64,000 nucleotides of DNA from Chlorokybus atmophyticus (Eukaryota; Plantae; Mesostigma and Chlorokybus algae): assembly GCA_009103225.1 (NCBI GenBank), contig RHPI01003330.1, positions 256,472 to 320,471 on the forward strand, in the 5' to 3' direction. Positions 36,401 through 61,018 of the stretch are shown piece after piece; the stretch's first letter is position 1; every line of letters begins with the position of its first letter. Both the position numbers and the translations under genes were made by a program. The notes under the pieces are model-generated. The model saw only the letters and a program-made list of their open reading frames with translations, was not told the DNA's origin and ran no database searches.

Positions 36401-39226
36401 TGACTCGCAACGTGCATGCAAGAGCTGGTACAAGGTCTTCCGCAACGATCAAATGTTGGGACTTCCAGCTGGCCGTGTCAACAATGACCTGGCCTTCATC
36501 GTCTGTCTTTGAGGACACCTCAACCACGGCGTACTTCAATCGGTCGTTGATTGCAATAGCTGCCAAGCAAACAGCACAATCAACAAACACAAATGGCAGC
36601 AAGCCCATGCAACTGTCCTCATTTATGGGTTGCTCAACTGTACAGCAAAAACATAAGGTACCAGCATTGGCAGGGATGGTCCAAGGCGTGGTTGTCCAGA
36701 TAGCAAGCGCAAGGTCTTCAGACTTGAGCTCCTCTGGAAATCCTTCTGGCATCATCTCCACTTGCATGGCAACATATACGCTGCGCGATGTGTGCCCATC
36801 TGGATACTGTCAAACTGAGTAAGTCTGCAGCAATGCATGAGGCGGAGAGAGCGCACACACAGCAGCGCATCGGGCGTGCCTTACCTCAAGCTCTGCCTCA
36901 GCAAGTGCAGTGCGCGAGGACGGGCTCCAGTGCACGGGCTTCAACCCACGGTATATGTGACCGTTTGCATACATTTTGCCAAACACACCAATCTGCAATA
37001 CGACACAAGTGCGCAGTAAGATTGTGGCCAAAAGCCAGTGCAAGCAAAACACTAACAGCGAGCTTGTGCGTTTTTACCTCTGCAGCTTCATAGATAGGCT
37101 TCATGGTCAGATAGGGTTTGTCCCACTCTGCGAGGATACCGTAGCGCTTAAACTGCTCCTTCTGCTCTTCAACGGTCTTTTGCGCAAACTCGGCAGCTTT
37201 CTTTCGGATGCCAACTGGAGTCAAGTTCTTTTTCTCCTCAGACTTGAGGGACTGCAAGACCTTCAGCTCGATGGGCAGCCCATGGCAGTCCCACCCGGGC
37301 ACGTATCGAACCTTGCGCCCTTGCAAGATCTGGTATCTGTTGATGAAGTCCTTCAAAACTTTGTTCAAGGCGTGGCCGATATGCAAAGAACCGTTTGCGT
37401 ATGGCGGGCCGTCATGCAGCGTGAACACTTCCTGACGGAACAGCGCATGTCAGAACTACTTAGCATAAAGAAACTACACTGATGTGCTTTGAAGTGAAAC
37501 AACACTTTTGTATTCATGCATCAGTGTCAAGCAAACTCATGACAATACAACTTTGCGACAACTGGAAAAAGCACTGACCCCAGTGGCGTTCTGATATAAG
37601 CGCTGATAAAGGCCAGACTCATCCCACCACTTCTGAATTTCCGGTTCCCTCACTGTCGAGTTGGCACGCAGGTCAAAGGACGTCTCTGGCAAGTTGACAG
37701 TCATCTTGTAGTCAATCTCCGGGGGCTCTGTGTCCACTTCCTCTTGAGCAAGCTGCGCATACAACTCGGATTCCACTGTGTCTGAGTACACGACATCTAG
37801 TCGCGAATCTGCAATGGCAACAATGTCGGTTGTCACACAAAAAGTACCACGATGTTGCACTGCGAGCTTAGCTGTGTAACTACGTCCACCAGGGCAGTAC
37901 ATTGACAAGTAAGTTGATCGAAGAGTGGACGAGGCGTAATATCGGACCATCACAACAACATCGCAACCTATACTTGCTACAAGCACCTTGACCGGCCAAA
38001 TGGATGACGCAACAGTCGTAAACTATTAGCTGCTCTAGCAAATGCTGACTTTGTGTGAGGGGACTGACATTGCACTCCACCAACCCACCTGCCGGCGCTG
38101 GCTTGCCCAGTTTCAACTCAATCCTTTGCCCCTTCTGCTGCTCGCGCCACTGCTCCATCTGTTCGGCATAGTCATCATTTGACTCAACAGCCTCCAGCAG
38201 CTCACTGCCAGCCAGAAGCCAACTCAATGTGTCTGTTGTCATGTAGTCGATAGTGACATGACTTGATGGCTGCATAGCCCAACAAAGCAAGGCCGGCTCG
38301 CATTGCATGGATGCAATTCGAGGCCGTGCATGTTGGCTGAAAGGACCAAGCACCGTTCATACTTGTCGTAGGAATCAAGAAGACAAACCTAGACTAGTGA
38401 CTGGCAATCCCTGGCCCACCAAGCACCGTAACCTACACCAAGCAACACTTGATGTAGGTTACGAGGCTGGATCAAGCTGCTATAGCGCATGTCACACACC
38501 CACCACGCCTGTCTCGTTACATTATTCAGATTGTTTTCATTTGCATGACTCTGTCAACTCACAAATGCTGGGGAAAAGTCGTAATGCATGCGTTGGCGTG
38601 AAACCAACAACGTGCTGAACTTCTGATTATAAGCGCATGCAGCTGAATCGGAAACACTAGTCAGGGAATCACGTCGCCTGTTTCCTTACTGGCAACGATA
38701 GCGACAATTCTCAACAAACTTAGCACTTGGACCAGATCTGTCTGCAAGCACTCGGACAGCATGCTGCGGAAGTGCATTGTGTTTACTCCCATCCATGAAA
38801 CGCACTACCCACCTGATGGCGGGCTCGTCAGCCTCGCCAGCGGGGACGCCTGTGGCGACGCCTGCAGCGCCATCGTTCTCCTCAGTAGTCGACATGCACC
38901 GCAGCTGTGCGCAGCGTGGGCGGCGCGCCAGTCCATTGTAATGCACCCCTGGAAGCTGCCGCCTAGCACGGGACCTCACGGAAGCCTGATTGCACAATGC
39001 ACATTGTGCATTGGCACAATGCACAATGTGGGCAGAAATTCACACACCTTCTGACAGTGGTATTCCAAACAACTGAAGCAGACATTACCGCAAGTGATGT
39101 GGATGCCCGCAATTGCGTGCGCCTAATCGCAGCTTGGCTGCTGACGCAGCGCTGGTGTGCTTGCTTCAGCACTGGGCACAGCAGCCTGCCGGCGGCGACA
39201 GCGGCGGCGGCGCTCGTCGCTGCCAT
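33498..39226 (-). CDS. ileS: Organellar (bacterial-type) isoleucine--tRNA ligase with transit peptide; many exons
   Basis: [12 protein letters not shown], [16 protein letters not shown] (HIGH), [45 protein letters not shown] and a C-terminal Zn knuckle KCKRCWNY...CERC. The start could also be the ATG at 39352. Confidence 0.96.
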
Positions 39227-40031: not shown

Positions 40032-42388
40032 ATGAAGCGCAGCAAGTCGGATGGTGCAATGGAAGGCTCCTCGCCTGCGCTGCTGTCGCTTGCAGCCCCG
40101 CTTTCCGCTGGGCTGTACGCTTTCATGGCCATATCCATGGTGAGCACGGCCGATTGCTTTGTGCTCGGGTGTTGTTTTGTTCGCAAACCAAAGTTTTGTT
40201 GCAGGAAGCAATGCCTTTCGTGCCTTGCATGCGATGCTTCCATGCATGCTTGTTGCTAGCATCCGTTGCAGGCATTGCTTGCGTGCATGCTTCCATAAAG
40301 CATTAAGCACGGAAGGAAAGCCATGCTCTGCACGTGGCAATGATTTGTACCAAGACATGCCCCCCCNNNNNNNNNNNNNNNNNNNNNNNNNNNNNNNNNN
40401 NNNNNNNNNNNNNNNNNNNNNNNNNNNNNNNNNNNNNNNNNNNNNNNNNNNNNNNNNNNNNNNNNNNNNNNNNNNNNNNNNNNNNNNNNNNNAACACATG
40501 TGTACATATACAGGCTCGATACGCACACACGCACACACGCGCACACATACGCATCTGCTGTTACCCACTCTCACCCACTCCAACACCCGCAGGAGGCCTC
40601 AACAGCCAACGATGACTCCCCCGCCCCTCATGCCCCCAAGTCCAAGTCCAAGTCCAAGCCCAAGCCCAAGTCTTCCCCCCCCCGGTGTTACTTGTGCATG
40701 CAGCCTTGTTAGAGCTTTCTTGCAAGGTGGTGGCTGACAGTTATCAGACAGCGCACGTGTCAGTGCAATGACTGCGACTTGAGCTATGGTCTTGTCCCAT
40801 TGTGCACGAACTGTACGTCTGCATGCAGGCCTTCTTTAATAAAGCCGTGCTGACTGTGCACAAGTTTGACCACCCGAACTTCCTCTTGCTGCTGCAAATG
40901 GTGGTCGCCTTGCTTACTGTCTATGCATTGAAGGTGAGCCAAGCAACTGCTGCCTGAGTAACGTGTAACAACAGGGATTGTTATGTTACCGACCCTTATG
41001 GTTGCATGCTTTGTCACAGACCATTGGCACATTGCGGTTGGAGCCGTTCACACGACAGCGTGCACGCGCGTTGGCACCAGTTGCCATCTTGTATAATGCC
41101 AATGTGGCGTTTGCACTGGCATCGCTATCGTCACTTAACATCCCGATGTACAATGTGTTGAAGGTGAATGGCTTGTAGTGGTGCACAATTCTGCTCATGT
41201 TCTTGAACGCGATGTACAAGGGTTGATGGTGGGCGTGTGGTTTGTGCGATCAGAGGCTGACGCCATGTGTGGTGCTTGCAATGGGTGGCTTAGTGGATCG
41301 CAAGCTTCCCTCACGCAACGTGTCGCTGTCTGTGATGGTCACGGTGTTGGGCTGCGTTGTTGCTGGCATCGGCGATCTTGCATTTGACCTCAAAGGGTGA
41401 GTGAACTATGTGCATGTTAAATGTAAACTGTTGCAAGCAGTGTTGTGAAAGCGCTTCAAACAGTTGTTTTCCACAGGTATGCCTTCGCTTGTATGAGCTG
41501 CCTGCTTCAGGTAAGTGCAAAAGCTTTCTGACGGGTGCAGTTGTGTTGCTGGCCTCCCTACATGGCCTTAAACAACATGCTTGTGTTGCAGTCCGCGTAC
41601 TTGTTGTGCGTGCAGAAGACTGGTGTTGAAAAGGGCATATCTTCCTCCACTCTGCTTGCGTACAATGCATTGCTGTCCATACCACCGCTGTTTGTCATTG
41701 CCGCCGCTACTGGAGAGGTAAGAGTTTATTGATTGTCAACATGGTATGCACGTGTGTTTGGTTACTAACATGGCATTTGCACCCCCCACAGTTGTCCACA
41801 GCAATAACCGCCTTGCGCCTTCCTCACAGTGTTGGATTTTGGTTTGCGCTTATTATGACTGTGGTAAGCATAGGATTGCAGGCTCATCCCAAGTCTGTGT
41901 TGTAGATGACAATGTGATGACTCTCAACTAACGGTGGTTTACTGCAGGCTGGCGGCATGCTGCTGAACTACGCTCTGTTCTTATGCACACTGCTCAACTC
42001 AGCCTTGACCACAACCATTGTTGGTGTGCTGAAGGTGGGTAGTTTCGTTTGTTCTTCATCAGCTTGCCGTCAGTATTTGTTCACTTGCGTGCTGTCAGCA
42101 ATGTTGCGTTGTTGTCTTGCCGCAATGCTTTACCGTGATAATGTTGTTGTAACATGTCTGTTGTTTGCTCAGGGTGTCATTGCCACAGCGTTGGGTTTTG
42201 TTCTGCTCGGCGGTGTTCAGGCTACGGCCCTCAACATTGCGGGCGTCGCCATGAACACAGTCGGAGGCGTATGGTACACGTACCTGACCTACCGAGAGAA
42301 AAAGCAGCGCTCTAAGCAAGCGGAGAAGCTGGAGCCTGCGGCGGAGCCGCTGTTGCAAAAGAGACCCAACGCGCATGCCGCTGTATGA
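40032..42388 (+). CDS. Nucleotide-sugar transporter, UTR7/SLC35D-like; multi-exon
   Basis: ...AISM|AFFNKAVL, FALASLSSLNIPMYNVLK|RLTP, GCVVAGIGDLAFD, NYALFLCTLLNSALTTTIVGVLK|G and GGVWY are typical of plant UTR7 and SLC35D transporters. Confidence 0.85.
40367..40492. other. Assembly gap (N run) in intron 1 of the transporter gene
   Basis: 126 N. Confidence 1.
40493..40676. repeat. 184-bp copy identical to 60670-60853
   Basis: Direct comparison shows the same sequence from aacacatgtgtacatatac to cccaagtcttcc (offset 20177). Confidence 0.95.
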
Positions 42389-42678
42389 CAGCAGTGCTGA
42401 TGTTGTAGCTATGTTTATACAGACGTGCATGTTGCCCAAAGCCCATGTGGATGTCTTAGTGTTATGACTAACCGTAAATGTTGTAGCAGCAAGGTTGGAC
42501 ACCGTGCGCAGCACTGCCCTTGCAGAGCATACAATGTGGACATGTTGAAACAATCTTTGCAGCTACGCCTAATTCATATCGACGCGTGCGGCGCTTAAAG
42601 CGGGAGAGAATATTACATCTGAAGTTGAGCTTTACAAGTGACAGCCATTTACAGCTATCTCTACCAAGAGCGCGCTGT

Positions 42679-45600
42679 TTAGAAATTCTCTTTATGAAAC
42701 TCGAAGGTGTTGTTGCCAGGCGACGTGAACTGCTTGCACATGGCGCTCAGCTCGTCCGCACCCGGCCCGCACAGGAACACGCCAATCGTCTCCTGCGGGT
42801 GGTTCCCGGATATCTGCTTGAATATGCGCCTCCAGTTCGGCCTACCCGCCCACCGCTTCCCCGCCCACCGCGCCTGCATAAGACCATCAGGAGTTGCAGC
42901 CTTATTGATATTATGTATGTGAATTTGCGTGTGCGTGTGCGCGTGCGGGTGCATGTATGCGTGCGGGTGCGCGTGTTTTGTCACCTTGTCGGTCTCTTTG
43001 GTGGCATCATCGTCCAGGCTGAGCTCCCCCGTCATGTACGTGTTGATCTCAAAGCGCGAGCTTAGCCTCTCGTCCTCCTCAAACTCCGCCAGCAGCCATG
43101 AGAACCAGTTAAACTCCTGCTTGTCCTTACATACCCAGTAGAAGTACACCTGAACACAATAGTTTTAGACTTTCTGTACACAGCACCGTTTCAAGCATGT
43201 GTACAAGAGGTAGTGTGCCACATATCTGTGTATCATGGCACACACGCCCAACCACACACGTACGCGTATGTGCACACATGGTGGCGGCTGTCTGCTCGAC
43301 GTATGCGTGTGCAGCAAGTGCTGATGTATGCTGGTGCTGGACATGCTGAATGTGTGCCTTTCATACATTGCACGCGTATACTGGTGCTTTGAATTTTGTA
43401 CACGCCCTTGCGTGCGTACACATACGCACATGCGCATGCATGCACACACACGCACACATGCTCATGCATGCACGCCGGACACTCCCCCTTTCCTTCACTC
43501 TCTCCCTCTCCCTCTCCCTTTTCCCACCTTGAGTGGTCTGAGTAGCGTAGCATAGAGTGCTGTGTCGTTGCGTTCTCCAGCGCTGTCGGGGCGGCCGGAA
43601 GGTTGGGACCCGCCTTCGCCGGCACCACCGCCCACCCCGCTCCCGAGCTGACGGGACCAGCGCAGCCGGCAGCTCTTCAGGACAGATGCGAAGGGTGTCA
43701 CGCCGATACCAGCACCCACCAACACCACAGTGCTGGGTAGGAATGAGTTGGTGCGTTTGCGCGTGTGTGTGTATGGTACATTGTGCAGCATCAGCCAATG
43801 CAAACTCACCTGTAGTCCACTACGTGTTCTGATCCTGCGCCATACGGCCCGTCCACCCTCAACTCTGGAGCAAGCCTGACGACGCATCCAATGACAGATA
43901 TCAGAGTGCTGCACGCAAATCTCATCAGCTTTATCACCTCTGGCTCTGCGTCTCTTCACCTCGAGATTTGAGGGATTTCAGCGGCTCTGATTGTAGAAGA
44001 GGCATCGTTGTCCTTGTCCTTGACCTTGTCCTTGGCCTTTCCGCTGCCCTTGCCCTTCTCGTCTTTGTCCTTACTGATCTTGGCTTGGGAGCGAAGGGGA
44101 AGGGGACTTGCCTGCGGGCACACGTCTCCATGCTGCAAAGGACAAACGAATTTCAACACGCGCACACGCACACGCACATGCGTATGCGTACTTACGACCA
44201 CACAACCACGCACGCGCACACCAACACCAACACCAACACCACCACACACGCGCACGCACAGACAGTCTCTCACTGATTCTCTCTCCCTCACTGACTAACT
44301 TGTGCTCACGCACTCACGCATTCCAAGACAACTTGTCATCTTGGTCTCTTACCAGCGTGTGTTTGTGAAAGGACGGGTCCGCGTATCGCACCGACCGCGC
44401 GCCGTCCGGGTTGAGCAGCTGCCTGAGTCCCGTCGTCCAGTCCCCGCGCGTGCGGATGTGAACGGAAACCAGGGGCTCCTCGGGCGCGCTCGTGATCGTG
44501 AACGGGTGCCACTCTACGCATGTGTATAGGGGCATATTGGCAACGGATTGAACGTGGGGAGAGAGAAGTGTGTCTCTCTGCGTGCGTGCGTGCCTGTGTG
44601 TGCGTACCATGCTTGGATATGTGCGGGCAGTTGAGGTACAGGTACTGCCCTGACTTGTATCTGAAACCCTTGAGGCGCATCTCCAACCTCATCACATCCG
44701 TGCCAGTTACCTATTGGAGGCCAAAAGCACACCCCGTTCAGCCAACAACGACAAACCAACCATTCACACCCTCTGTTCAATGGCGCATGCACACCTGTGT
44801 ACACGTGTGTGTGTGCATGTGCGCGATGACCCAACTTTGTGTGCAACAGGGGCATGCGCACGTGTGCTTGTATGCGCACTTGTGTGCATGTGTTTGCATG
44901 ACCACGTGTACACGCAACACACGCGTGCGCATACACGTATCGTTGCATGCAACCACGTGTGTGCATGCGTGCTTGCATGTTCACATTCACCCTCACCTCA
45001 TCCACCACCCGTAGCAGTCTCACTTCCCTCCCCGCCCTCATCCTCCCCACCAGCTTATCCAAGAACCACACCAACACGGGAAAGAAGCTCCAGTGATGGA
45101 AGTTCCTGCTGTGTATCCACAGCAGCAAAAACACGCCGATGTAGAGGTACCGATGCACCGCGAAGAAGAGGTCGTAACCCCCGATCTTGAACCAACCCAA
45201 GTCGACACCTTTGCCACGTCGCACACGCGTGTGGGCCGTCGCGAACATGATGAGGAAGAAGAGGATGATAAGGTGACCGGTGATGCCCTCGCGGGTGGCA
45301 AATAAGAGGTCCACGCCGTTGCCGGACTGTGGGAGGGGGGGAGACTTAATATTTCTCTCTGTGTGTGTGTGCGTGTGTGCGTGCGTGTGTGTGGTGCACC
45401 TGTGTGTATGTGTACTTACGTTGAGCATCCAGCAGTAGTGCATGGCGATGTGGAGTGCCGAGGCGAGTGCTATAACGCCGGCAACGATCTGGTGGAAGAG
45501 CAGATGATCATCAAGCGGTATCGCCTCCGCTACGGGTGTCGTCCTGGAACCCAGAACAAAAGTCTTACTTGTAACAACGAACACACACACAACCACTTCT

Positions 45601-47260
45601 CTCACACCCACCCACCCACCTTATCCACGACAGCAGGTTCCTCATGACCGGAAACAGCACCAAGTTGCAGTTGAAGTCGAGCATGTACCCTCCGGCCTTG
45701 GCGAACGGGTAGTACGGCCCGTACGGCCACACTTTGAGATTATTCACAGCGAAGAGCCACCCGTCCCAGAACAGCGCCGCGTTGAAGGCCGCGTACAGGA
45801 GGAGGAACCTTCTTCCTTTGGGAAGCCTGTTCCACCACTTTGACAGGAAGGAGGCGGAGGGGGTTGTGGTTGGGGAGGGGGAGCCGGGAGGGGAGGTGGA
45901 GGGGGAAGGTGTTGTTGTTGTTGTAGTGGTGGTGGCTACCAAGGCGGAGGCGCTGCTAGGGGTGGAGGGGTTGGCTCCTGTCACGGGGATCACTGTGGGG
46001 GCGCGCCAGAAGAGGAACTTGGTGAAGGGGGACTTGGATGGGCCCTGTTGCTCTGTAGGGGAGGAGAAGGGGGGGTGAGTGAGAGGGCCTGAAGTGAATT
46101 GTGAGACGGCGAGTGTCGGGTGGATACGTGCGACACCAGAGTCACGTGACCATGTGTAAGCGTGCATGCGCATGTCCCTGCACTTTAAACACACACACAC
46201 ACTCCATCCCGCACACATACCCACCCACGCACACGCTGACGCACGCACATAACATCCCGCACACCTCACCTTGGAGGGCCTGTTCAAACTTGGTGGTCCC
46301 ACCCCCCTCTCCCGTCTCTCTCACCCCCCTCGCAGCCGCCTCCCTCTCTCTCCTCCTCCTCTTCCTTATCCCCGCCCCGAACCATACCCCGGCCGCCGCC
46401 GCCGCCACCCCCGCGACCCCCCCCGTGGCTCCCCCCGCAATCGCGGCCGCCCGGCTCGCGGGAGTGATCACCAGAAACCCCTTCTGCGACCGGTTGGAGA
46501 AGTTGTTGTTGCGGGTGGAGGAGTAGGCGAAGGAACCGGGGGAACGGAGGGGGAGGAGACCCGCGTCGAAGTAGGCGGAGGCGGAGTTCAGGACCTGGGA
46601 GGGGGAGAGTGTGTTTGTGTGTGTGTGTGTGTGTCGCTCGTCAAGATGTACACAATGCTTGTGGGTGCACACGCGGGCAGCGCAAGCAGCCCTGTACAGT
46701 GTAGTTGTACTTGTGTCACTGCTGGCAGTGGTAGTGATGTACCACTAGGTGGTGGTGGTGGTGGTGGGAGTGCATACAGTAGTAGTAGCAGTAGTTGAGC
46801 AGTAGTATCAGCACACAGGACACATACACAGATACTGGCAGTAGCGGTGGTGGAGATAGTAGTAGCTGTGTTCACAGGCACAGCACCAGTACTGGTAGTA
46901 GCCATAGTGGTAGCGATAGTGGTAGTGGTGTACACACTGGTACTGGGACACAGTGCCAGCAGCACAGTGCATGTATACTGCACGTATGCCCTCCCACCTT
47001 GCAATTGGTCGGACTCTGCGTATCCGGGTTCGTGTAATTGCACCCACTTTGCCTCAACAGCGCCAGCATCAGCACGACATCCGTATCCGGTCTCCCGTCC
47101 GTCCCCCTCATCATGGTGTTGGCGGACGCCGGGAGAGGGAACGTCGCGTCGGGAGCGGCGATCTGGACGAGGTTGGAACGGTCGGTCCCAGTCTTGCCCT
47201 CGCCGTCGTTGCCCTGGGAGTTGGCGTCGGAACCGGTCCATTGGACGTGGAGGAAGTCGC
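42679..47260 (-). CDS. Promoterless duplicate of the 3' half of the DD3-3-NOX gene (copy A)
   Basis: Exons run from [12 protein letters not shown] through the TM helix and NOX core to FHKENF*. There is no start exon. Confidence 0.75.
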
Positions 47261-47529
47261 CTTGGGGAGTTAAGGGGGGAAAAGGGGTGTTGGGGATAGT
47301 GTGGGTGGGTGTGTTGCGTACGCATGCACAGTAACACGCAGGCGCAGACACTCACGCACGCATGCTAGCATGTGAGTAGGCATGGACGTTTGGGGGTGAA
47401 ACAATCTTTGCAGCTACGCCTAATTCATATCGACGCGTGCGGCGCTTAAAGCGGGAGAGAATATTACATCTGAAGTTGAGCTTTACAAGTGACAGCCATT
47501 TACAGCTATCTCTACCAAGAGCGCGCTGT

Positions 47530-50500
47530 TTAGAAATTCTCTTTATGAAACTCGAAGGTGTTGTTGCCAGGCGACGTGAACTGCTTGCACATGGCGCTCA
47601 GCTCGTCCGCACCCGGCCCGCACAGGAACACGCCAATCGTCTCCTGCGGGTGGTTCCCGGATATCTGCTTGAATATGCGCCTCCAGTTCGGCCTACCCGC
47701 CCACCGCTTCCCCGCCCACCGCGCCTGCATAAGACCATCAGGAGTTGCAGCCTTATTGATATTATGTATGTGAATTTGCGTGTGCGTGTGCGCGTGCGGG
47801 TGCATGTATGCGTGCGGGTGCGCGTGTTTTGTCACCTTGTCGGTCTCTTTGGTGGCATCATCGTCCAGGCTGAGCTCCCCCGTCATGTACGTGTTGATCT
47901 CAAAGCGCGAGCTTAGCCTCTCGTCCTCCTCAAACTCCGCCAGCAGCCATGAGAACCAGTTAAACTCCTGCTTGTCCTTACATACCCAGTAGAAGTACAC
48001 CTGAACACAATAGTTTTAGACTTTCTGTACACAGCACCGTTTCAAGCATGTGTACAAGAGGTAGTGTGCCACATATCTGTGTATCATGGCACACACGCCC
48101 AACCACACACGTACGCGTATGTGCACACATGGTGGCGGCTGTCTGCTCGACGTATGCGTGTGCAGCAAGTGCTGATGTATGCTGGTGCTGGACATGCTGA
48201 ATGTGTGCCTTTCATACATTGCACGCGTATACTGGTGCTTTGAATTTTGTACACGCCCTTGCGTGCGTACACATACGCACATGCGCATGCATGCACACAC
48301 ACGCACACATGCTCATGCATGCACGCCGGACACTCCCCCTTTCCTTCACTCTCTCCCTCTCCCTCTCCCTTTTCCCACCTTGAGTGGTCTGAGTAGCGTA
48401 GCATAGAGTGCTGTGTCGTTGCGTTCTCCAGCGCTGTCGGGGCGGCCGGAAGGTTGGGACCCGCCTTCGCCGGCACCACCGCCCACCCCGCTCCCGAGCT
48501 GACGGGACCAGCGCAGCCGGCAGCTCTTCAGGACAGATGCGAAGGGTGTCACGCCGATACCAGCACCCACCAACACCACAGTGCTGGGTAGGAATGAGTT
48601 GGTGCGTTTGCGCGTGTGTGTGTATGGTACATTGTGCAGCATCAGCCAATGCAAACTCACCTGTAGTCCACTACGTGTTCTGATCCTGCGCCATACGGCC
48701 CGTCCACCCTCAACTCTGGAGCAAGCCTGACGACGCATCCAATGACAGATATCAGAGTGCTGCACGCAAATCTCATCAGCTTTATCACCTCTGGCTCTGC
48801 GTCTCTTCACCTCGAGATTTGAGGGATTTCAGCGGCTCTGATTGTAGAAGAGGCATCGTTGTCCTTGTCCTTGACCTTGTCCTTGGCCTTTCCGCTGCCC
48901 TTGCCCTTCTCGTCTTTGTCCTTACTGATCTTGGCTTGGGAGCGAAGGGGAAGGGGACTTGCCTGCGGGCACACGTCTCCATGCTGCAAAGGACAAACGA
49001 ATTTCAACACGCGCACACGCACACGCACATGCGTATGCGTACTTACGACCACACAACCACGCACGCGCACACCAACACCAACACCAACACCACCACACAC
49101 GCGCACGCACAGACAGTCTCTCACTGATTCTCTCTCCCTCACTGACTAACTTGTGCTCACGCACTCACGCATTCCAAGACAACTTGTCATCTTGGTCTCT
49201 TACCAGCGTGTGTTTGTGAAAGGACGGGTCCGCGTATCGCACCGACCGCGCGCCGTCCGGGTTGAGCAGCTGCCTGAGTCCCGTCGTCCAGTCCCCGCGC
49301 GTGCGGATGTGAACGGAAACCAGGGGCTCCTCGGGCGCGCTCGTGATCGTGAACGGGTGCCACTCTACGCATGTGTATAGGGGCATATTGGCAACGGATT
49401 GAACGTGGGGAGAGAGAAGTGTGTCTCTCTGCGTGCGTGCGTGCCTGTGTGTGCGTACCATGCTTGGATATGTGCGGGCAGTTGAGGTACAGGTACTGCC
49501 CTGACTTGTATCTGAAACCCTTGAGGCGCATCTCCAACCTCATCACATCCGTGCCAGTTACCTATTGGAGGCCAAAAGCACACCCCGTTCAGCCAACAAC
49601 GACAAACCAACCATTCACACCCTCTGTTCAATGGCGCATGCACACCTGTGTACACGTGTGTGTGTGCATGTGCGCGATGACCCAACTTTGTGTGCAACAG
49701 GGGCATGCGCACGTGTGCTTGTATGCGCACTTGTGTGCATGTGTTTGCATGACCACGTGTACACGCAACACACGCGTGCGCATACACGTATCGTTGCATG
49801 CAACCACGTGTGTGCATGCGTGCTTGCATGTTCACATTCACCCTCACCTCATCCACCACCCGTAGCAGTCTCACTTCCCTCCCCGCCCTCATCCTCCCCA
49901 CCAGCTTATCCAAGAACCACACCAACACGGGAAAGAAGCTCCAGTGATGGAAGTTCCTGCTGTGTATCCACAGCAGCAAAAACACGCCGATGTAGAGGTA
50001 CCGATGCACCGCGAAGAAGAGGTCGTAACCCCCGATCTTGAACCAACCCAAGTCGACACCTTTGCCACGTCGCACACGCGTGTGGGCCGTCGCGAACATG
50101 ATGAGGAAGAAGAGGATGATAAGGTGACCGGTGATGCCCTCGCGGGTGGCAAATAAGAGGTCCACGCCGTTGCCGGACTGTGGGAGGGGGGGAGACTTAA
50201 TATTTCTCTCTGTGTGTGTGTGCGTGTGTGCGTGCGTGTGTGTGGTGCACCTGTGTGTATGTGTACTTACGTTGAGCATCCAGCAGTAGTGCATGGCGAT
50301 GTGGAGTGCCGAGGCGAGTGCTATAACGCCGGCAACGATCTGGTGGAAGAGCAGATGATCATCAAGCGGTATCGCCTCCGCTACGGGTGTCGTCCTGGAA
50401 CCCAGAACAAAAGTCTTACTTGTAACAACGAACACACACACAACCACTTCTCTCACACCCACCCACCCACCTTATCCACGACAGCAGGTTCCTCATGACC

Positions 50501-52111
50501 GGAAACAGCACCAAGTTGCAGTTGAAGTCGAGCATGTACCCTCCGGCCTTGGCGAACGGGTAGTACGGCCCGTACGGCCACACTTTGAGATTATTCACAG
50601 CGAAGAGCCACCCGTCCCAGAACAGCGCCGCGTTGAAGGCCGCGTACAGGAGGAGGAACCTTCTTCCTTTGGGAAGCCTGTTCCACCACTTTGACAGGAA
50701 GGAGGCGGAGGGGGTTGTGGTTGGGGAGGGGGAGCCGGGAGGGGAGGTGGAGGGGGAAGGTGTTGTTGTTGTTGTAGTGGTGGTGGCTACCAAGGCGGAG
50801 GCGCTGCTAGGGGTGGAGGGGTTGGCTCCTGTCACGGGGATCACTGTGGGGGCGCGCCAGAAGAGGAACTTGGTGAAGGGGGACTTGGATGGGCCCTGTT
50901 GCTCTGTAGGGGAGGAGAAGGGGGGGTGAGTGAGAGGGCCTGAAGTGAATTGTGAGACGGCGAGTGTCGGGTGGATACGTGCGACACCAGAGTCACGTGA
51001 CCATGTGTAAGCGTGCATGCGCATGTCCCTGCACTTTAAACACACACACACACTCCATCCCGCACACATACCCACCCACGCACACGCTGACGCACGCACA
51101 TAACATCCCGCACACCTCACCTTGGAGGGCCTGTTCAAACTTGGTGGTCCCACCCCCCTCTCCCGTCTCTCTCACCCCCCTCGCAGCCGCCTCCCTCTCT
51201 CTCCTCCTCCTCTTCCTTATCCCCGCCCCGAACCATACCCCGGCCGCCGCCGCCGCCACCCCCGCGACCCCCCCCGTGGCTCCCCCCGCAATCGCGGCCG
51301 CCCGGCTCGCGGGAGTGATCACCAGAAACCCCTTCTGCGACCGGTTGGAGAAGTTGTTGTTGCGGGTGGAGGAGTAGGCGAAGGAACCGGGGGAACGGAG
51401 GGGGAGGAGACCCGCGTCGAAGTAGGCGGAGGCGGAGTTCAGGACCTGGGAGGGGGAGAGTGTGTTTGTGTGTGTGTGTGTGTGTCGCTCGTCAAGATGT
51501 ACACAATGCTTGTGGGTGCACACGCGGGCAGCGCAAGCAGCCCTGTACAGTGTAGTTGTACTTGTGTCACTGCTGGCAGTGGTAGTGATGTACCACTAGG
51601 TGGTGGTGGTGGTGGTGGGAGTGCATACAGTAGTAGTAGCAGTAGTTGAGCAGTAGTATCAGCACACAGGACACATACACAGATACTGGCAGTAGCGGTG
51701 GTGGAGATAGTAGTAGCTGTGTTCACAGGCACAGCACCAGTACTGGTAGTAGCCATAGTGGTAGCGATAGTGGTAGTGGTGTACACACTGGTACTGGGAC
51801 ACAGTGCCAGCAGCACAGTGCATGTATACTGCACGTATGCCCTCCCACCTTGCAATTGGTCGGACTCTGCGTATCCGGGTTCGTGTAATTGCACCCACTT
51901 TGCCTCAACAGCGCCAGCATCAGCACGACATCCGTATCCGGTCTCCCGTCCGTCCCCCTCATCATGGTGTTGGCGGACGCCGGGAGAGGGAACGTCGCGT
52001 CGGGAGCGGCGATCTGGACGAGGTTGGAACGGTCGGTCCCAGTCTTGCCCTCGCCGTCGTTGCCCTGGGAGTTGGCGTCGGAACCGGTCCATTGGACGTG
52101 GAGGAAGTCGC
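47530..52111 (-). CDS. Promoterless duplicate of the 3' half of the DD3-3-NOX gene (copy B)
   Basis: Same as copy A, shifted by 4851 bp. Confidence 0.75.
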
Positions 52112-52380
52112 CTTGGGGAGTTAAGGGGGGAAAAGGGGTGTTGGGGATAGTGTGGGTGGGTGTGTTGCGTACGCATGCACAGTAACACGCAGGCGCAGAC
52201 ACTCACGCACGCATGCTAGCATGTGAGTAGGCATGGACGTTTGGGGGTGAAACAATCTTTGCAGCTACGCCTAATTCATATCGACGCGTGCGGCGCTTAA
52301 AGCGGGAGAGAATATTACATCTGAAGTTGAGCTTTACAAGTGACAGCCATTTACAGCTATCTCTACCAAGAGCGCGCTGT

Positions 52381-55300
52381 TTAGAAATTCTCTTTATGAA
52401 ACTCGAAGGTGTTGTTGCCAGGCGACGTGAACTGCTTGCACATGGCGCTCAGCTCGTCCGCACCCGGCCCGCACAGGAACACGCCAATCGTCTCCTGCGG
52501 GTGGTTCCCGGATATCTGCTTGAATATGCGCCTCCAGTTCGGCCTACCCGCCCACCGCTTCCCCGCCCACCGCGCCTGCATAAGACCATCAGGAGTTGCA
52601 GCCTTATTGATATTATGTATGTGAATTTGCGTGTGCGTGTGCGCGTGCGGGTGCATGTATGCGTGCGGGTGCGCGTGTTTTGTCACCTTGTCGGTCTCTT
52701 TGGTGGCATCATCGTCCAGGCTGAGCTCCCCCGTCATGTACGTGTTGATCTCAAAGCGCGAGCTTAGCCTCTCGTCCTCCTCAAACTCCGCCAGCAGCCA
52801 TGAGAACCAGTTAAACTCCTGCTTGTCCTTACATACCCAGTAGAAGTACACCTGAACACAATAGTTTTAGACTTTCTGTACACAGCACCGTTTCAAGCAT
52901 GTGTACAAGAGGTAGTGTGCCACATATCTGTGTATCATGGCACACACGCCCAACCACACACGTACGCGTATGTGCACACATGGTGGCGGCTGTCTGCTCG
53001 ACGTATGCGTGTGCAGCAAGTGCTGATGTATGCTGGTGCTGGACATGCTGAATGTGTGCCTTTCATACATTGCACGCGTATACTGGTGCTTTGAATTTTG
53101 TACACGCCCTTGCGTGCGTACACATACGCACATGCGCATGCATGCACACACACGCACACATGCTCATGCATGCACGCCGGACACTCCCCCTTTCCTTCAC
53201 TCTCTCCCTCTCCCTCTCCCTTTTCCCACCTTGAGTGGTCTGAGTAGCGTAGCATAGAGTGCTGTGTCGTTGCGTTCTCCAGCGCTGTCGGGGCGGCCGG
53301 AAGGTTGGGACCCGCCTTCGCCGGCACCACCGCCCACCCCGCTCCCGAGCTGACGGGACCAGCGCAGCCGGCAGCTCTTCAGGACAGATGCGAAGGGTGT
53401 CACGCCGATACCAGCACCCACCAACACCACAGTGCTGGGTAGGAATGAGTTGGTGCGTTTGCGCGTGTGTGTGTATGGTACATTGTGCAGCATCAGCCAA
53501 TGCAAACTCACCTGTAGTCCACTACGTGTTCTGATCCTGCGCCATACGGCCCGTCCACCCTCAACTCTGGAGCAAGCCTGACGACGCATCCAATGACAGA
53601 TATCAGAGTGCTGCACGCAAATCTCATCAGCTTTATCACCTCTGGCTCTGCGTCTCTTCACCTCGAGATTTGAGGGATTTCAGCGGCTCTGATTGTAGAA
53701 GAGGCATCGTTGTCCTTGTCCTTGACCTTGTCCTTGGCCTTTCCGCTGCCCTTGCCCTTCTCGTCTTTGTCCTTACTGATCTTGGCTTGGGAGCGAAGGG
53801 GAAGGGGACTTGCCTGCGGGCACACGTCTCCATGCTGCAAAGGACAAACGAATTTCAACACGCGCACACGCACACGCACATGCGTATGCGTACTTACGAC
53901 CACACAACCACGCACGCGCACACCAACACCAACACCAACACCACCACACACGCGCACGCACAGACAGTCTCTCACTGATTCTCTCTCCCTCACTGACTAA
54001 CTTGTGCTCACGCACTCACGCATTCCAAGACAACTTGTCATCTTGGTCTCTTACCAGCGTGTGTTTGTGAAAGGACGGGTCCGCGTATCGCACCGACCGC
54101 GCGCCGTCCGGGTTGAGCAGCTGCCTGAGTCCCGTCGTCCAGTCCCCGCGCGTGCGGATGTGAACGGAAACCAGGGGCTCCTCGGGCGCGCTCGTGATCG
54201 TGAACGGGTGCCACTCTACGCATGTGTATAGGGGCATATTGGCAACGGATTGAACGTGGGGAGAGAGAAGTGTGTCTCTCTGCGTGCGTGCGTGCCTGTG
54301 TGTGCGTACCATGCTTGGATATGTGCGGGCAGTTGAGGTACAGGTACTGCCCTGACTTGTATCTGAAACCCTTGAGGCGCATCTCCAACCTCATCACATC
54401 CGTGCCAGTTACCTATTGGAGGCCAAAAGCACACCCCGTTCAGCCAACAACGACAAACCAACCATTCACACCCTCTGTTCAATGGCGCATGCACACCTGT
54501 GTACACGTGTGTGTGTGCATGTGCGCGATGACCCAACTTTGTGTGCAACAGGGGCATGCGCACGTGTGCTTGTATGCGCACTTGTGTGCATGTGTTTGCA
54601 TGACCACGTGTACACGCAACACACGCGTGCGCATACACGTATCGTTGCATGCAACCACGTGTGTGCATGCGTGCTTGCATGTTCACATTCACCCTCACCT
54701 CATCCACCACCCGTAGCAGTCTCACTTCCCTCCCCGCCCTCATCCTCCCCACCAGCTTATCCAAGAACCACACCAACACGGGAAAGAAGCTCCAGTGATG
54801 GAAGTTCCTGCTGTGTATCCACAGCAGCAAAAACACGCCGATGTAGAGGTACCGATGCACCGCGAAGAAGAGGTCGTAACCCCCGATCTTGAACCAACCC
54901 AAGTCGACACCTTTGCCACGTCGCACACGCGTGTGGGCCGTCGCGAACATGATGAGGAAGAAGAGGATGATAAGGTGACCGGTGATGCCCTCGCGGGTGG
55001 CAAATAAGAGGTCCACGCCGTTGCCGGACTGTGGGAGGGGGGGAGACTTAATATTTCTCTCTGTGTGTGTGTGCGTGTGTGCGTGCGTGTGTGTGGTGCA
55101 CCTGTGTGTATGTGTACTTACGTTGAGCATCCAGCAGTAGTGCATGGCGATGTGGAGTGCCGAGGCGAGTGCTATAACGCCGGCAACGATCTGGTGGAAG
55201 AGCAGATGATCATCAAGCGGTATCGCCTCCGCTACGGGTGTCGTCCTGGAACCCAGAACAAAAGTCTTACTTGTAACAACGAACACACACACAACCACTT

Positions 55301-58300
55301 CTCTCACACCCACCCACCCACCTTATCCACGACAGCAGGTTCCTCATGACCGGAAACAGCACCAAGTTGCAGTTGAAGTCGAGCATGTACCCTCCGGCCT
55401 TGGCGAACGGGTAGTACGGCCCGTACGGCCACACTTTGAGATTATTCACAGCGAAGAGCCACCCGTCCCAGAACAGCGCCGCGTTGAAGGCCGCGTACAG
55501 GAGGAGGAACCTTCTTCCTTTGGGAAGCCTGTTCCACCACTTTGACAGGAAGGAGGCGGAGGGGGTTGTGGTTGGGGAGGGGGAGCCGGGAGGGGAGGTG
55601 GAGGGGGAAGGTGTTGTTGTTGTTGTAGTGGTGGTGGCTACCAAGGCGGAGGCGCTGCTAGGGGTGGAGGGGTTGGCTCCTGTCACGGGGATCACTGTGG
55701 GGGCGCGCCAGAAGAGGAACTTGGTGAAGGGGGACTTGGATGGGCCCTGTTGCTCTGTAGGGGAGGAGAAGGGGGGGTGAGTGAGAGGGCCTGAAGTGAA
55801 TTGTGAGACGGCGAGTGTCGGGTGGATACGTGCGACACCAGAGTCACGTGACCATGTGTAAGCGTGCATGCGCATGTCCCTGCACTTTAAACACACACAC
55901 ACACTCCATCCCGCACACATACCCACCCACGCACACGCTGACGCACGCACATAACATCCCGCACACCTCACCTTGGAGGGCCTGTTCAAACTTGGTGGTC
56001 CCACCCCCCTCTCCCGTCTCTCTCACCCCCCTCGCAGCCGCCTCCCTCTCTCTCCTCCTCCTCTTCCTTATCCCCGCCCCGAACCATACCCCGGCCGCCG
56101 CCGCCGCCACCCCCGCGACCCCCCCCGTGGCTCCCCCCGCAATCGCGGCCGCCCGGCTCGCGGGAGTGATCACCAGAAACCCCTTCTGCGACCGGTTGGA
56201 GAAGTTGTTGTTGCGGGTGGAGGAGTAGGCGAAGGAACCGGGGGAACGGAGGGGGAGGAGACCCGCGTCGAAGTAGGCGGAGGCGGAGTTCAGGACCTGG
56301 GAGGGGGAGAGTGTGTTTGTGTGTGTGTGTGTGTGTCGCTCGTCAAGATGTACACAATGCTTGTGGGTGCACACGCGGGCAGCGCAAGCAGCCCTGTACA
56401 GTGTAGTTGTACTTGTGTCACTGCTGGCAGTGGTAGTGATGTACCACTAGGTGGTGGTGGTGGTGGTGGGAGTGCATACAGTAGTAGTAGCAGTAGTTGA
56501 GCAGTAGTATCAGCACACAGGACACATACACAGATACTGGCAGTAGCGGTGGTGGAGATAGTAGTAGCTGTGTTCACAGGCACAGCACCAGTACTGGTAG
56601 TAGCCATAGTGGTAGCGATAGTGGTAGTGGTGTACACACTGGTACTGGGACACAGNCGGATTATTGGTAACAGGACTCCTGTCATTATTCTCCCTCGAGT
56701 CCACCGACCTCAGCCCCGTTGTACTAGTAGTAGTAGCAGTAGCGCTACTCCCTACACCTGCCGTCGAGAGCTTGCCCGCGGTCCAGGTCTGGTAATCGCC
56801 AGTGGTGATGTTGTAACGGATGCGCAGGACGCACACGGACTCCTGAAGGCAGGAGGAACAACATGTTACTGGTGTTGGCATTGTGTTGTTGTGATTGGTA
56901 TTCTACCTGTAGGTTGAAGGGCGGGAGGGGGACTGTCCAGTTGTACGAGGGGCTGTCGTGTCCGGGGCCGGCGCCGTTGCCAAGGTGGTTGTCGCGAGAG
57001 AAGGGAGCAGCGGAGCAGTCTGCGTGCAATTGTAGCAGCATCAATATGTAGCTCAAACACGCACGCGCGCATGCATGGCCAACTGCAATCATCCTCACCA
57101 GGTGGTGCGATGCCATGCGCCGGGCCGGTGACCCACTGCGCCCCCGTGACGCTGGCCGCCTGGCACGCCGCCGGATTATTGTACGGCGCCTGAGTACAAT
57201 ACCCTGCAGAGAGAGACCCACCACTCGTTGGTCATCTCCTCACAACATGTCCAAACACCCACACCCCACACCTCTGCCCAGGACGTTCTCGGAGTTGGCG
57301 CGGTAGTAGCTGCATCGCGACGGGTCGGAGGTCAGCACGGCGATGTCGCGCCAGGGGGAAGGGTGCCAGTAGGGGTAGTAGTCGCGCTCCTCAGGACACT
57401 CGAGACCGTAACTGGGTGACAAAAGAGTGGGTGAGCGCATACGATGTGAGTGTGTGTAATCTCAGCCCGCGCGCGTGCACCCCGCGCAAAAGGGAACACC
57501 AACACATGCTTACTGCTACAGTGTACGTGCGTGCCTTTCCGCGTATGCCCGTGCACGTGCAATCGCGTGACCACGTGTGCACCCTCGCACGTGTGCACGC
57601 ACGCAGCGTGCTCAACCCACATGCGCGACCGCAACTGTATCCGCGCACACACATACAAACACGCGATCGTAGTCCCTCACCGATTCCCGTTATTGTTCTG
57701 TCTCGTCGCCGTCGCCCCCACCCCGTTATTCATCCCCCTATCCGCCGTAAACAACCCTTTGTTGCGCTCCCTCGCCAGGCAGTCGGCGTAGTGTCCCTGC
57801 GACTCGTGCATCCCGTACGTCGCGTTGAGGCTCTGAGTAGCGTCGTTGGGGACTGTATTTGTCGACTGGCCGTCGCGGAGGAGGGCGGAGGAGGGGGGAG
57901 AGGAGTCGCACATGTACTGCAATATCACCTGCAAGTGGGTGGGGATGTGGGTGGGTGTGCCAAGATAATAATTCACGCATGCGTGAATTTGTTTACGTGT
58001 GCATGTGCATGTAAGCACACATGGGTTGGGCGTGGGTGTGCACGCGCATGTTTACCTGTTCCTACACGTATGACTCTACACTACAGTTGCGTGAGCGTAG
58101 TCATAGCCATGCTATGTACGGGTACACTACGTATGCGTATATCTCTATATATAGATATGTGTCCAATTCTCTCAATTGTTCAGTGCTTGCCTCGCAGCGG
58201 GTCTTGAGGGGTCCGTCGATGTTCTGCTGTCCGCAGGCGTGCTGCATGGTCCAGCCGAGGTACAGCACGGACCCCGAATAGAAGTACATGATCCCTTGGC

Positions 58301-58515
58301 CCGCGCCGGGCTTGGACACATTGTACCTGTATGTGTGCGAGTGTGTGCTTGGTATCATGCGAGGTGTTGTGAGTGGGCAGCGGTGCTTACGTGTTGTCTG
58401 GGTTGAGGCAGTTTGGCTTGCAGTTGTCGCCGACCTGGTACCCGCCGTTGTCGTTATTCTGGGAGTCGAAGAGGCGATTGGCATTGCGACGGTTGTTCTG
58501 TTGCTGTTCTTGTTG

Positions 58516-58549
<34 letters not shown>

Positions 58550-58753
58550 NNNNNNNNNNNNNNNNNNNNNNNNNNNNNNNNNNNNNNNNNNNNNNNNNNN
58601 NNNNNNNNNNNNNNNNNNNNNNNNNNNNNNNNNNNNNNNNNNNNNNNNNNNNNNNNNNNNNNNNNNNNNNNNNNNNNNNNNNNNNNNNNNNNNNNNNNNN
58701 NNNNNNNNNNNNNNNNNNNNNNNNNNNNNNNNNNNNNNNNNNNNNNNNNNNNN

Positions 58754-58826
<73 letters not shown>

Positions 58827-59387
58827 TCTCTCCCCCTCTCCCTCTCCCTCTCTCGCCCTCTCTCTCCCTCGCCCTCGCCCTCTCTCGCCCTCTCTCGCCC
58901 TCTCTCGCCCTCTCTCGCCCTCTCTCGCCCTCTCTCGCCCTCTCTGTCACTCTCGCTCGCTCTCTCTCGTCTCTCTTTGTAACATCATTCTCATCAAACA
59001 GTTTAATGTACGTTTTCTTTGTTCGTCGTTTTCCCATGCAAGACCCCTGCCTACTGTGTGCATGCCTTTTATGAGTCAGCACAACGAGTCACCAACGAAG
59101 TGCAAACAACCTGACAGTAAACCCCTGCATGCAACGCCATGTCTATAACCTGACTCTCTCTGTGTGCGTACATGCACTGCTGCTTCATGAGTGAGTAATC
59201 ATAATTCACGTGTATGACCCCAATGCGTGCAACAGTTGCGAAACACCTCGTTGAGCTTGTCGTTGGAGCCCCTTGGAGAGTGCAGGTATATGTCGGCGAG
59301 GCAGGCGTGTGGAAGGGCCAACAATGCCGCCGCCAGAAGCAACAGCAGCAACGACAAGGATGACTGCCCAACCCAGTGAGAAGCCAT
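52381..59387 (-). CDS. DD3-3-family ectodomain fused to an NADPH oxidase (gp91phox/RBOH-type core); internal part missing at N 56656
   Basis: Signal peptide, then DD3-3 motifs [77 protein letters not shown] and [16 protein letters not shown] helix follows. NOX motifs: [17 protein letters not shown], heme His pairs FHQIVA..ALH and [55 protein letters not shown]. Confidence 0.88.
58550..58753. other. Assembly gap (N run) in intron 1 of DD3-3-NOX, flanked by (CA)n and (CT)n
   Basis: 204 N between microsatellites. Confidence 1.
58754..58945. repeat. (CT)n microsatellite followed by CCCTCTCTCG 10-mer tandem units
   Basis: Directly visible. Confidence 0.9.
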
Positions 59388-59703: not shown

Positions 59704-61018
59704 ATGCTGCCTTCCCAGACCGCCGCCCATGTCACCGCCGCCGCCGTCTCCGCCGCAGGTGACGTGGCGCTCTTTCCAACTGCACGTGACCATCCGTACC
59801 AAACAGCAAACGGCTGCTTTTTCAGCTATTTTTGGCTCTCCGCAATCATACTGATACTATCACGTGACCAGCAGGGTCAAGCTGGTGGCTGACTCTCTGA
59901 CCAGGCGGCGGCGGCGGCGGCGGCGGAGGAGGAGGAGGAGGAGGAGGAGGAGGAGGAGAAGTTTGCGATTTTGAGGACGTGCGTGAGAGTGTATTAAAGG
60001 TGTTAGGCGCTGGTGTGGCGGTGCTGTGTTGAGCGGGTATATTCGCTGCTGCGGGGAGAGCGGGGTGGAGGCGAAGAAGGGGTGCGGTGCATGTTGTTGG
60101 CAACATGATGATGTGCTACGTGATGTGGCTATGAGAAGCAGCTGATAGCCACACCCCTACTCTCTATCTGCTTCTGGACTGACAGGTAAGCTGTGTGCAC
60201 ACAACACAACTTCAGAATTGCAATAGCCCACACTGTTGTACTTACTCCATACACCACTACGTCTTGAACATACTTTCCACGTTATCAGTAATACCATCGC
60301 AGCAACAAACACTGTGCTCACCACCAACACCACCATTGACTCTATCATCATCAGCAGCAGCGATGAGGCCCGGCGGCAGTGATCGCACATGGGACGAATG
60401 GGTGACGCGTGAGTTTCTGTGGGCGATGCGCGCAAAGGGAGTGTTGCCATCACCCGGGTCGCCCACAACAACACCGGGAACAACATCAACAACAACGACA
60501 GATGTGACGTCCCGTGAACGCCTCCTCAACGACCTGTACCGCGGGTCCGCGGAACGCATCTTCCCGGACCCGAAGCAAGTCGAGAAGAAAATCGCACGAG
60601 CCGTCACTTGGCTCAGGGAGCAGGTGAGCAAGGGCGATGTATATGTATACAAACATGCAAACAAAGACGAACACATGTGTACATATACAGGCTCGATACG
60701 CACACACGCACACACGCGCACACATACGCATCTGCTGTTACCCACTCTCACCCACTCCAACACCCGCAGGAGGCCTCAACAGCCAACGATGACTCCCCCG
60801 CCCCTCATGCCCCCAAGTCCAAGTCCAAGTCCAAGCCCAAGCCCAAGTCTTCCTCCTCCGCGCCGCCGCCCACGTCCACGCGCACGCGCAAGGTGCTGAA
60901 GCGTCGCGCGCGGGCGCTGACGGTCGAGCTGGCGGCCGCGAGGGGGGCGAAGGAGGACGCCGAACGGAGGCTGAGGGAGATGATAATGACGGAAGGGGTG
61001 GGAGGGGGAGAGTGTTAG
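59704..61018 (+). CDS. Hypothetical protein, about 227 aa, 5 exons, divergent from DD3-3-NOX
   Basis: Exons 59704-59758, 59905-59978, 60149-60185, 60355-60623 and 60770-61018 join in frame with GT-AG boundaries (684 nt). No family recognised. Confidence 0.55.
59904..59957. repeat. (GGC)n(GGA)n triplet repeat (poly-Gly if exonic)
   Basis: Directly visible. Confidence 0.9.

Follow-up and report, generated by a model that had tools for sequence, protein, structure and literature searches.

DUOX is the classic NADPH oxidase (NOX) endowed with an ectodomain of its own, and this ectodomain sets the fate of the reactive oxygen species (ROS) made by the enzyme. Protein DD3-3 is described in published accounts as a surface glycoprotein without known function. 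In the present work, we analyze a gene of the alga Chlorokybus atmophyticus in which a DD3-3 ectodomain is joined to a NOX core. It is located in a stretch of 64,000 nucleotides (nt), hereafter the window, that corresponds to positions 256,472 to 320,471 of contig RHPI01003330.1 (assembly GCA_009103225.1). The gene occupies the minus strand from an ATG at 59387 to a TAA stop at 52383-52381 and encodes, in this order, a signal peptide, the DD3-3 ectodomain, a single transmembrane (TM) helix followed by RKRRRR, a linker of ~110 amino acids (aa) and a full NOX core. The DD3-3/NOX fusion is very probably real, the decisive evidence being the occurrence of full-length proteins combining both parts in distant eukaryotes. 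We consider it likely that the locus, incompletely assembled here, holds one gene for a seven-TM flavocytochrome belonging to an undescribed and widespread NOX subfamily.

The closest described layout is that of DUOX1/2, in which, as in this protein, a signal peptide precedes a large ectodomain, and one additional TM helix leads over a cytosolic segment to a structurally similar NOX core. The differences concern the ectodomain, which is of the DD3-3 type instead of peroxidase-homology (the N-terminal exons give no Pfam peroxidase match) and whose docking is not confidently predicted (pTM 0.51), and the cytosolic segment, a low-complexity linker devoid of EF-hands according to Pfam. We know of no DUOXA-type partner for the DD3-3/NOX fusion. 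Protein DD3-3 of Dictyostelium (Q58A42) and its animal counterparts, such as HrSMLP1, are homologous to the ectodomain over their full length in both fold and sequence; they are glycosylated and many are membrane-anchored. These stand-alone proteins end after the anchor, however, and the animal ones fall outside the group of fused sequences in our tree. DOMON-FRE and MsrQ-MsrP likewise pair a ferric-reductase-type membrane module with an extracytoplasmic redox partner, but their metalloreductase/YedZ-type modules lack the NOX O2-site signature and the partner domains are unrelated to DD3-3.

The NOXs of Chytridiomycota, Chlorophyta and early-diverging eukaryotes have been left 'unclassified' (Massari et al. 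2022, PMC9421330). They resemble the present family by the absence of EF-hands, a basal position and, for some of them, the presence of His119, whereas that work describes no N-terminal domain. The chytrid fusions (e.g. Spizellomyces SPPG_05133) probably belong to this set. DD3-3 is not among the nine domain variants reported by Zhang et al., and our literature search found no publication that joins DD3-3 with an NADPH oxidase or describes such an architecture, which is apparently undescribed in print. The first-pass annotation of this locus had proposed a DUOX-like layout foreign to the described NOX classes, a view in agreement with this survey.

Fusion proteins in distant eukaryotes

The 87-aa DD3-3 exon carrying the QWTGS motif was searched against 1.84 billion representatives and returned 199 matches. 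Every one of the 13 distinct long matches (816-1,430 aa) has all three Pfam domains of NOX on the C-terminal side of its DD3-3 match, so that the combination read by the first-pass annotation from a single locus recurs in one chain elsewhere. DD3-3 and NOX are encoded by single Trinity transcripts in Ceratiomyxa, Biecheleria and Artemidia, and are also joined in the genomes of Symbiodiniaceae, where some UniRef entries are named 'Protein DD3-3', and of Amoeboaphelidium. A full-length search extends the family to most of the eukaryotic supergroups and adds many chytrids, transcripts from MMETSP and EukProt and further dinoflagellates; cluster look-ups add Nephroselmis pyriformis, a pelagophyte, Gefionella, Polarella, Crypthecodinium and Gymnodinium. 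The fusion ranges over green algae, dinoflagellates, pelagophytes, chytrids, aphelids, Amoebozoa and a malawimonad. It is common in databases, hence undescribed rather than unseen. The identity of the Chlorokybus protein to any of these relatives is at most about 52%, and the layout common to them consists of the motif STRNNxFSNRSQK, a TM helix, a variable low-complexity basic linker and NOX.

A tree of 41 ectodomains places all the fused ones (27 of 27) in one group with a support of 91/89, together with five short proteins. The stand-alone proteins of animals, Diacronema and Planoprotostelium lie outside this group, and Nephroselmis is found among the nearest relatives of the Chlorokybus sequence. 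Such a pattern would be compatible with one old fusion, short of proving it. Some fusions are further extended: the protein of the malawimonad Gefionella okellyi (P0176) possesses an extra SH3 domain, and two EukProt models of 1,900-2,100 aa (P0219 and P0226) carry an extra AMP-binding domain (PF00501) and may be gene-model fusions.

The NADPH oxidase core

The 3' exons give Pfam matches above cut-off to Ferric_reduct, FAD_binding_8 and NAD_binding_6. Alignment to NOX2, NOX5 and csNOX5 recovers the four heme-ligand His of TM3 and TM5 (NOX2 His101, 115, 209 and 222). His119 is present in the sequence HIAMH, and Thr-Gly178/179 are aligned to the TG of NOX5; His119, Thr178 and Gly179 are the residues that separate NOX from metalloreductases (FRE) (Zhang et al. 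2013). HPFT, GxGxxP, CGP and the C-terminal aromatic residue (the terminal F of HKENF) are all present, and the complete NOX core announced by the first-pass annotation is thereby borne out. Among 37 fusions, the heme His, His119 and Gly179 are invariant, and Thr178 is not among the listed invariant or near-invariant columns. The best structural match of the family's C-terminal half is NOX2 (E 3.8e-36), followed by DUOX1 and NOX5.

Besides the N-terminal ectodomain and its additional helix (TM0), there are further differences with the NOX2 and NOX5 cores. The position of NOX2 Arg54, part of the O2-reducing centre, is occupied by a Lys, a conservative change that is invariant in the fusion family, and the TM5 His pair of the Chlorokybus protein has a spacing of 13. 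Neither EF-hands nor other recognisable regulatory domains were detected by Pfam on exons 10 and 11, which encode the linker. By residue and domain criteria, the oxidase part is thus predicted to be an NADPH oxidase.

The DD3-3 ectodomain

Pfam does not contain a DD3-3 model, and the 5' exons gave only below-threshold noise (Mucin, Toxin_19). The structure of the ectodomain was therefore approached through an AlphaFold2 (AF2) model of the ectodomain of the closest relative (pLDDT 81.6, pTM 0.85). Its top match is Dictyostelium DD3-3 (Q58A42), aligned over the full length with E 5.7e-50, TM-score 0.82 and 36% identity, in line with the original assignment of the N-terminal region to DD3-3. The last ~170 residues of the ectodomain, including QWTGS and STRNN…, adopt a cupredoxin fold (Foldseek probability 1.0 to plastocyanins, VIA Z <=8.3), and the iron-uptake cupredoxins EfeO, FtrB and Fet3p are found among the structural neighbours of this module. 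A blue-copper (type-1) site was ruled out, as the ligand loop STRNNxFSNRSQK is devoid of conserved Cys, His and Met. The resemblance of the N-terminal β-sandwich to lytic polysaccharide monooxygenases was not used, its Z of about 5.5 lying within the background of the aligner.

Sequence conservation is high throughout the family, with 62 invariant columns in 40 ectodomains, among them His84, and six near-invariant His. The features that would mark the Chlorokybus ectodomain as an exported, anchored glycoprotein had been noticed at first reading and are all found: the signal peptide, seven N-x-S/T sequons, an Ala/Gly-rich hydrophobic helix at model residues 500-524 and RKRRRR directly after it.

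Gene structure and transcripts

The exons and associated features are as follows; the coding sequence is abbreviated CDS and the untranslated region UTR.

Exon 1, 59247..59387, minus strand: ATG, signal peptide and DD3-3 start, phase 0 end (CDS model and homolog tblastn)
204-N gap, 58550..58753, no strand: flanked by (GA)n and (GT)n runs, part of intron 1
Exon 2, 58391..58503, minus strand: phase 0 start (CDS model and homolog tblastn)
Exon 3, 58191..58326, minus strand: YNVSKPG…TRCE, followed by a GC-AG intron (CDS model and homolog tblastn)
Exon 4, 57681..57928, minus strand: VILQYMC… (CDS model and homolog tblastn)
Exon 5, 57272..57411, minus strand: most conserved DD3-3 block (tblastn, 82% identity to homolog P0016)
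Exon 6, 57099..57203, minus strand: DD3-3 (CDS model and homolog tblastn)
Exon 7, 56907..57019, minus strand: …SRDNHLGN…NWT… (CDS model and homolog tblastn)
Exon 8, 56657..56842, minus strand: frame open into the N at 56656 (homolog alignment extends to 56657)
Single N, 56656..56656, no strand: real break in the gene, hiding ~82 conserved DD3-3 codons, the QWTGS exon and introns
Exon 9 (QWTGS exon), 51849..52111, minus strand: …TNCK, cupredoxin part of DD3-3, phase 1 in and phase 0 out (homolog tblastn and RNA splice to exon 10)
Exon 9, second copy, 46998-47260, minus strand: exon 9 is restricted to repeat copies 2 and 1, at the start of each
Exon 10 (TM exon), 55972..56296, minus strand: DD3-3 end, TM0 helix, RKRRRR, start of the cytosolic linker, phase 1 end (homolog tblastn)
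TM-to-NOX intron (exon 10 to exon 11), 55755..55971, minus strand: 217 nt, GT-AG, outside RNA coverage
Exon 11, 55322..55754, minus strand: linker rich in Thr, Pro and Ser, then NOX TM1-TM2 with Lys in place of NOX2 Arg54 (3' junction by RNA)
Exon 12, 55122..55245, minus strand: NOX TM3 with the His101, His115 and His119 equivalents (RNA and alignment)
Exon 13, 54699..55028, minus strand: TM4-TM6, Thr-Gly178/179, TM5 His pair 13 residues apart (RNA and Pfam)
Exon 14, 54310..54412, minus strand: first part of FAD_binding_8 (Pfam and RNA)
Exon 15, 54055..54215, minus strand: FAD motif HPFTITS (Pfam and RNA)
Exon 16, 53662..53834, minus strand: Lys/Asp-rich insertion (RNA contig)
Exon 17, 53512..53577, minus strand: start set by RNA contig
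Exon 18, 53230..53434, minus strand: NADPH-binding motif (Pfam and RNA)
Exon 19, 52687..52851, minus strand: NAD_binding_6 (Pfam and homolog tblastn)
Exon 20, 52381..52575, minus strand: CGP, …FHKENF, TAA stop (Pfam)
3'UTR, 52248..52380, minus strand: 133 nt with three TGTAA, reaching the repeat-unit boundary (RNA contig extends into the unique flank left of 42546)
Tandem array, 42546-47396, 47397-52247 and 52248-56655 (partial): period 4,851 bp, 2.9 copies, ending exactly at the N 56656

The first-pass annotation had viewed the interval 52381-59387 as a complete gene whose exons splice in frame. All the protein motifs it listed are indeed encoded on the minus strand of this interval save QWTGS, which occurs solely at 52094 and 47243, and neither completeness nor in-frame splicing could be maintained. 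The QWTGS exon lies outside, at 52111-51849, and ~82 codons are lost at the N at 56656. A direct splice over this N, from exon 8 (phase 1 with a donor at 56758) to the TM exon (phase 0), had to be rejected: without the QWTGS exon, the resulting 3,394-nt CDS runs out of frame and stops at residue 463. With exon 9 inserted, the splice phases fit and the open reading frame encodes 1,218 aa, or 1,207 aa after correction of exon 17, whose initial acceptor at 53610 was replaced by 53577 on RNA contig evidence. This donor at 56758 was also dropped, the frame being open to the N and matching the next block of the homologs. The junction between the TM exon and the NOX exon stands as first read, a clean phase-1 GT-AG intron (CAA G/gtgagg...ctacag/AG CAA).

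RNA contigs were taken from one run (X2), the only run that covers much of the gene; X1, X3 and X4 match the locus too sparsely to bear on the unit junction or the number of copies. They confirm eight junctions (exons 9/10, 11/12, 12/13, 13/14, 14/15, 15/16, 16/17 and 17/18), the first of them through one contig in which the QWTGS exon is spliced to the TM exon, whose opening 15 nt it includes. RNA evidence across the junctions, envisaged from the start, is thus available on both sides of the fusion point, with the TM-to-NOX junction itself outside coverage. Depth is alike on DD3-3 and NOX exons, at 3-6.

The minus-strand segment 52248-52380, 133 nt past the stop, contains three TGTAA pentamers where ~0.13 would be expected by chance; we take them to resemble the chlorophyte polyadenylation signal. 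A deep RNA contig of 1,732 nt (mean word depth 136.6) connects the last NOX exon and the 3'UTR with the unique flanking sequence on the left side of 42546. On the plus strand of this flank, 41957-42388 encodes the C-terminal exon of a nucleotide-sugar/TPT-like transporter gene converging on the NOX 3' end. As the contig reaches the last NOX exon from the transporter-gene flank, there may be a 3' overlap between the two genes. Farther away, exons of an isoleucyl-tRNA-synthetase-like gene are found at 36165-37428 on the minus strand. At the other end of the locus, ~1 kb upstream of exon 1, lie a run of (GGC)n/(GGA)n and the start of a divergent plus-strand gene (59900-59960 and 60195-60899), which suggests that the two genes share a bidirectional promoter region.

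Assembly of the locus

The DD3-3/NOX locus is misassembled and broken inside the gene. The 204-N gap has no consequence for the protein: exon 1 ends and exon 2 begins in phase 0 and the peptide obtained by joining them is exactly as long as the family consensus, so that no coding sequence was lost there. At the single N, on the other hand, the frame of exon 8 is open and its last residues match the start of a block of ~82 aa common to every homolog (consensus …SPVK…GPLRLA…QFGRTFEDRSH…NVRGRRGNIVQVYPSVEYDF…). A tblastn search of the whole window with homologs yielded only noise for this block (best E 1.1), and the homolog alignment indicates that the exons of the window cover homolog residues 20-357 and 440-574, residues 358-439 being absent from the assembly. 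Since every homolog keeps this block, the complete protein is probably near 1,300 aa. We infer that the gene is intact in the real genome.

Self-comparison of the window revealed that 42546-51804 and 47397-56655 are identical at 100.000% over 9,259 bp. On the minus strand, each repeat unit opens with 135 intronic nt, continues with the QWTGS exon, the TM exon and the complete set of NOX exons including the stop, and closes with 133 nt of 3'UTR. The third unit, inside 52381-59387, lacks the QWTGS exon because the first 443 nt of the unit are missing. Whether 2.9 identical copies of the 3' two-thirds of the gene really exist is uncertain. It is quite conceivable, at somewhat less than an even chance, that the array is an assembly artefact and that the genome has one copy of the region from exon 9 to the 3'UTR: identity is perfect, the array terminates at a contig break, a second perfect duplicate of 184 bp sits at a gap edge, and the RNA contig joins the 3'UTR to the unique flank and not to the unit junction. 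Against such an origin, the unit junction (52247/52248; …tttggggg/tgaaacaatc…) lies outside any repeat and has no k-mer in common with the true left flank, so that some reads must carry it, and it is present twice in the assembly. The alternative would be a real and very recent tandem duplication leaving 5'-truncated downstream copies.

The 184-bp duplicate links 40493-40676 to 60670-60853, 100% identical on the same strand and 20,177 bp apart, the two copies diverging at 40677/60854. The first copy directly follows a 126-N gap (40367-40492); the duplicate is a low-complexity repeat of the dispersed kind or else a scaffolding artefact at the gap edge. With contigs ending in repeats, order and copy number are insecure, and the scaffold is unreliable from about 40.4 to 60.9 kb.

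Possible roles of the ectodomain

Domain order, motifs and the majority of splice junctions are established, as is the recurrence of the fusion in distant eukaryotes, and the function of the assembled parts can be considered. The protein would begin with a signal peptide, followed by a glycosylated DD3-3 ectodomain of ~550 aa with a membrane-proximal cupredoxin fold. Behind it, a single TM helix and its basic stop-transfer would lead, through a linker that is disordered and cytosolic, to the canonical NOX core. In topological terms this layout is coherent: DD3-3 would be placed outside by the signal peptide and TM0, and the NOX N-terminus would be placed inside, as NOX requires, by the basic stop-transfer and the linker. 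NADPH electrons would reach O2 on the outer side by way of FAD and two hemes, and superoxide or H2O2 would be formed beside the DD3-3 domain, which may use or convert these ROS on an extracellular substrate in the manner of the DUOX peroxidase-like domain. We favour such a catalytic use of ROS over gating or direct electron transfer because DD3-3 is conserved like an enzyme rather than like a receptor.

A number of observations weigh against one intact gene with a catalytic ectodomain. In this organism, the junction between exons 10 and 11 is covered by neither read nor contig, falling in a coverage void at 55605-56600; an exact search of metagenome contigs for the spliced junction gave 0 matches, and a protein search for a junction-spanning fragment gave only two weak, unrelated ones. 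In-frame ATGs occur within the 217-nt intron, so that a separate NOX start would be possible from sequence alone. The 5' exons are linked to the rest solely via the scaffold N, and part of the domain is missing. On the protein side, the cupredoxin module lacks the Cys/His/Met copper ligands and retains only His427 as a conserved His, no cofactor or substrate is known, and the full-length AF2 model (pTM 0.51) leaves the docking of the ectodomain on the oxidase unsupported. Finally, the TM5 His pair (54830-54870, minus strand) is 13 residues apart, compared with 12 in NOX5, csNOX5, Spizellomyces and the aligned fusion homologs; the RNA contig is identical to this region with zero differences.

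A less probable role for DD3-3 is that of a sensor which, on encountering a ligand or a contact, would gate NOX through TM0 and the linker without acting on ROS. The same architecture would serve it equally, and a family devoid of EF-hands or recognisable regulatory domains according to Pfam needs some other control; Massari et al. propose a 'novel mode of activation' for the unclassified NOXs (PMC9421330), and antibody binding to an ascidian DD3-3-like surface glycoprotein triggers phenoloxidase release (PMC6916515). However, 62 invariant columns across supergroups would be unusual for a ligand-binding receptor, and a variable, low-complexity linker makes a poor allosteric conduit.

We regard as improbable that a metal or redox centre of the ectodomain takes electrons from the outer heme, which would make the protein a transmembrane reductase comparable to MsrQ-MsrP and DOMON-FRE instead of an O2 reductase. 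The cupredoxin fold does adjoin the membrane, with EfeO, FtrB and Fet3p among its neighbours, the ectodomain holds six near-invariant His, and fusions of ferric reductase domains with extracellular redox domains are known (PMC3591440). Nevertheless, the loop STRNNxFSNRSQK offers no type-1 copper ligands, the N-terminal part has middling matches (Z about 5.5), and the oxidase retains the NOX-specific O2-site residues His119 and Thr-Gly178/179.

Least of all do we expect two adjacent genes, a membrane-anchored DD3-3 ending after the TM exon and a separate NOX with the 217 nt as intergenic space, for although the junction is devoid of RNA, the interval holds in-frame ATGs and stand-alone DD3-3 proteins ending after the TM helix exist, the splice sites are strong GT-AG sites of matching phase, 217 nt are too short for a terminator and a promoter and contain no TGTAA, exon 11 offers a separate NOX no ATG ahead of TM2, RNA depth is alike on both sides, and all of the nearest relatives carry the fusion, several of them in a single transcript, with fused ectodomains that group together in the tree.

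Implications for NOX and DD3-3 evolution

Returning to the single fused gene and its proposed ROS-using ectodomain, we tentatively propose that DD3-3 could be a redox enzyme domain of ancient origin that works outside the cell and is naturally paired with a NOX-type source of electrons or ROS, and that the fusion could be a further NOX class dating from early eukaryotes. If true, the fusion would act as a 'Rosetta stone', implying an action on NOX- or DUOX-derived ROS also for the DD3-3 proteins that occur unfused in Dictyostelium and invertebrates (e.g. the ascidian allorecognition protein HrSMLP1). A second class of NOX bearing an ectodomain would fill the 'unclassified NOX' gap in NOX phylogenies. 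It would also give the first mechanistic lead for DD3-3, a family known from Dictyostelium without a biochemical function, and would offer a candidate for what produces the extracellular superoxide that has been reported in phytoplankton and coral symbionts.

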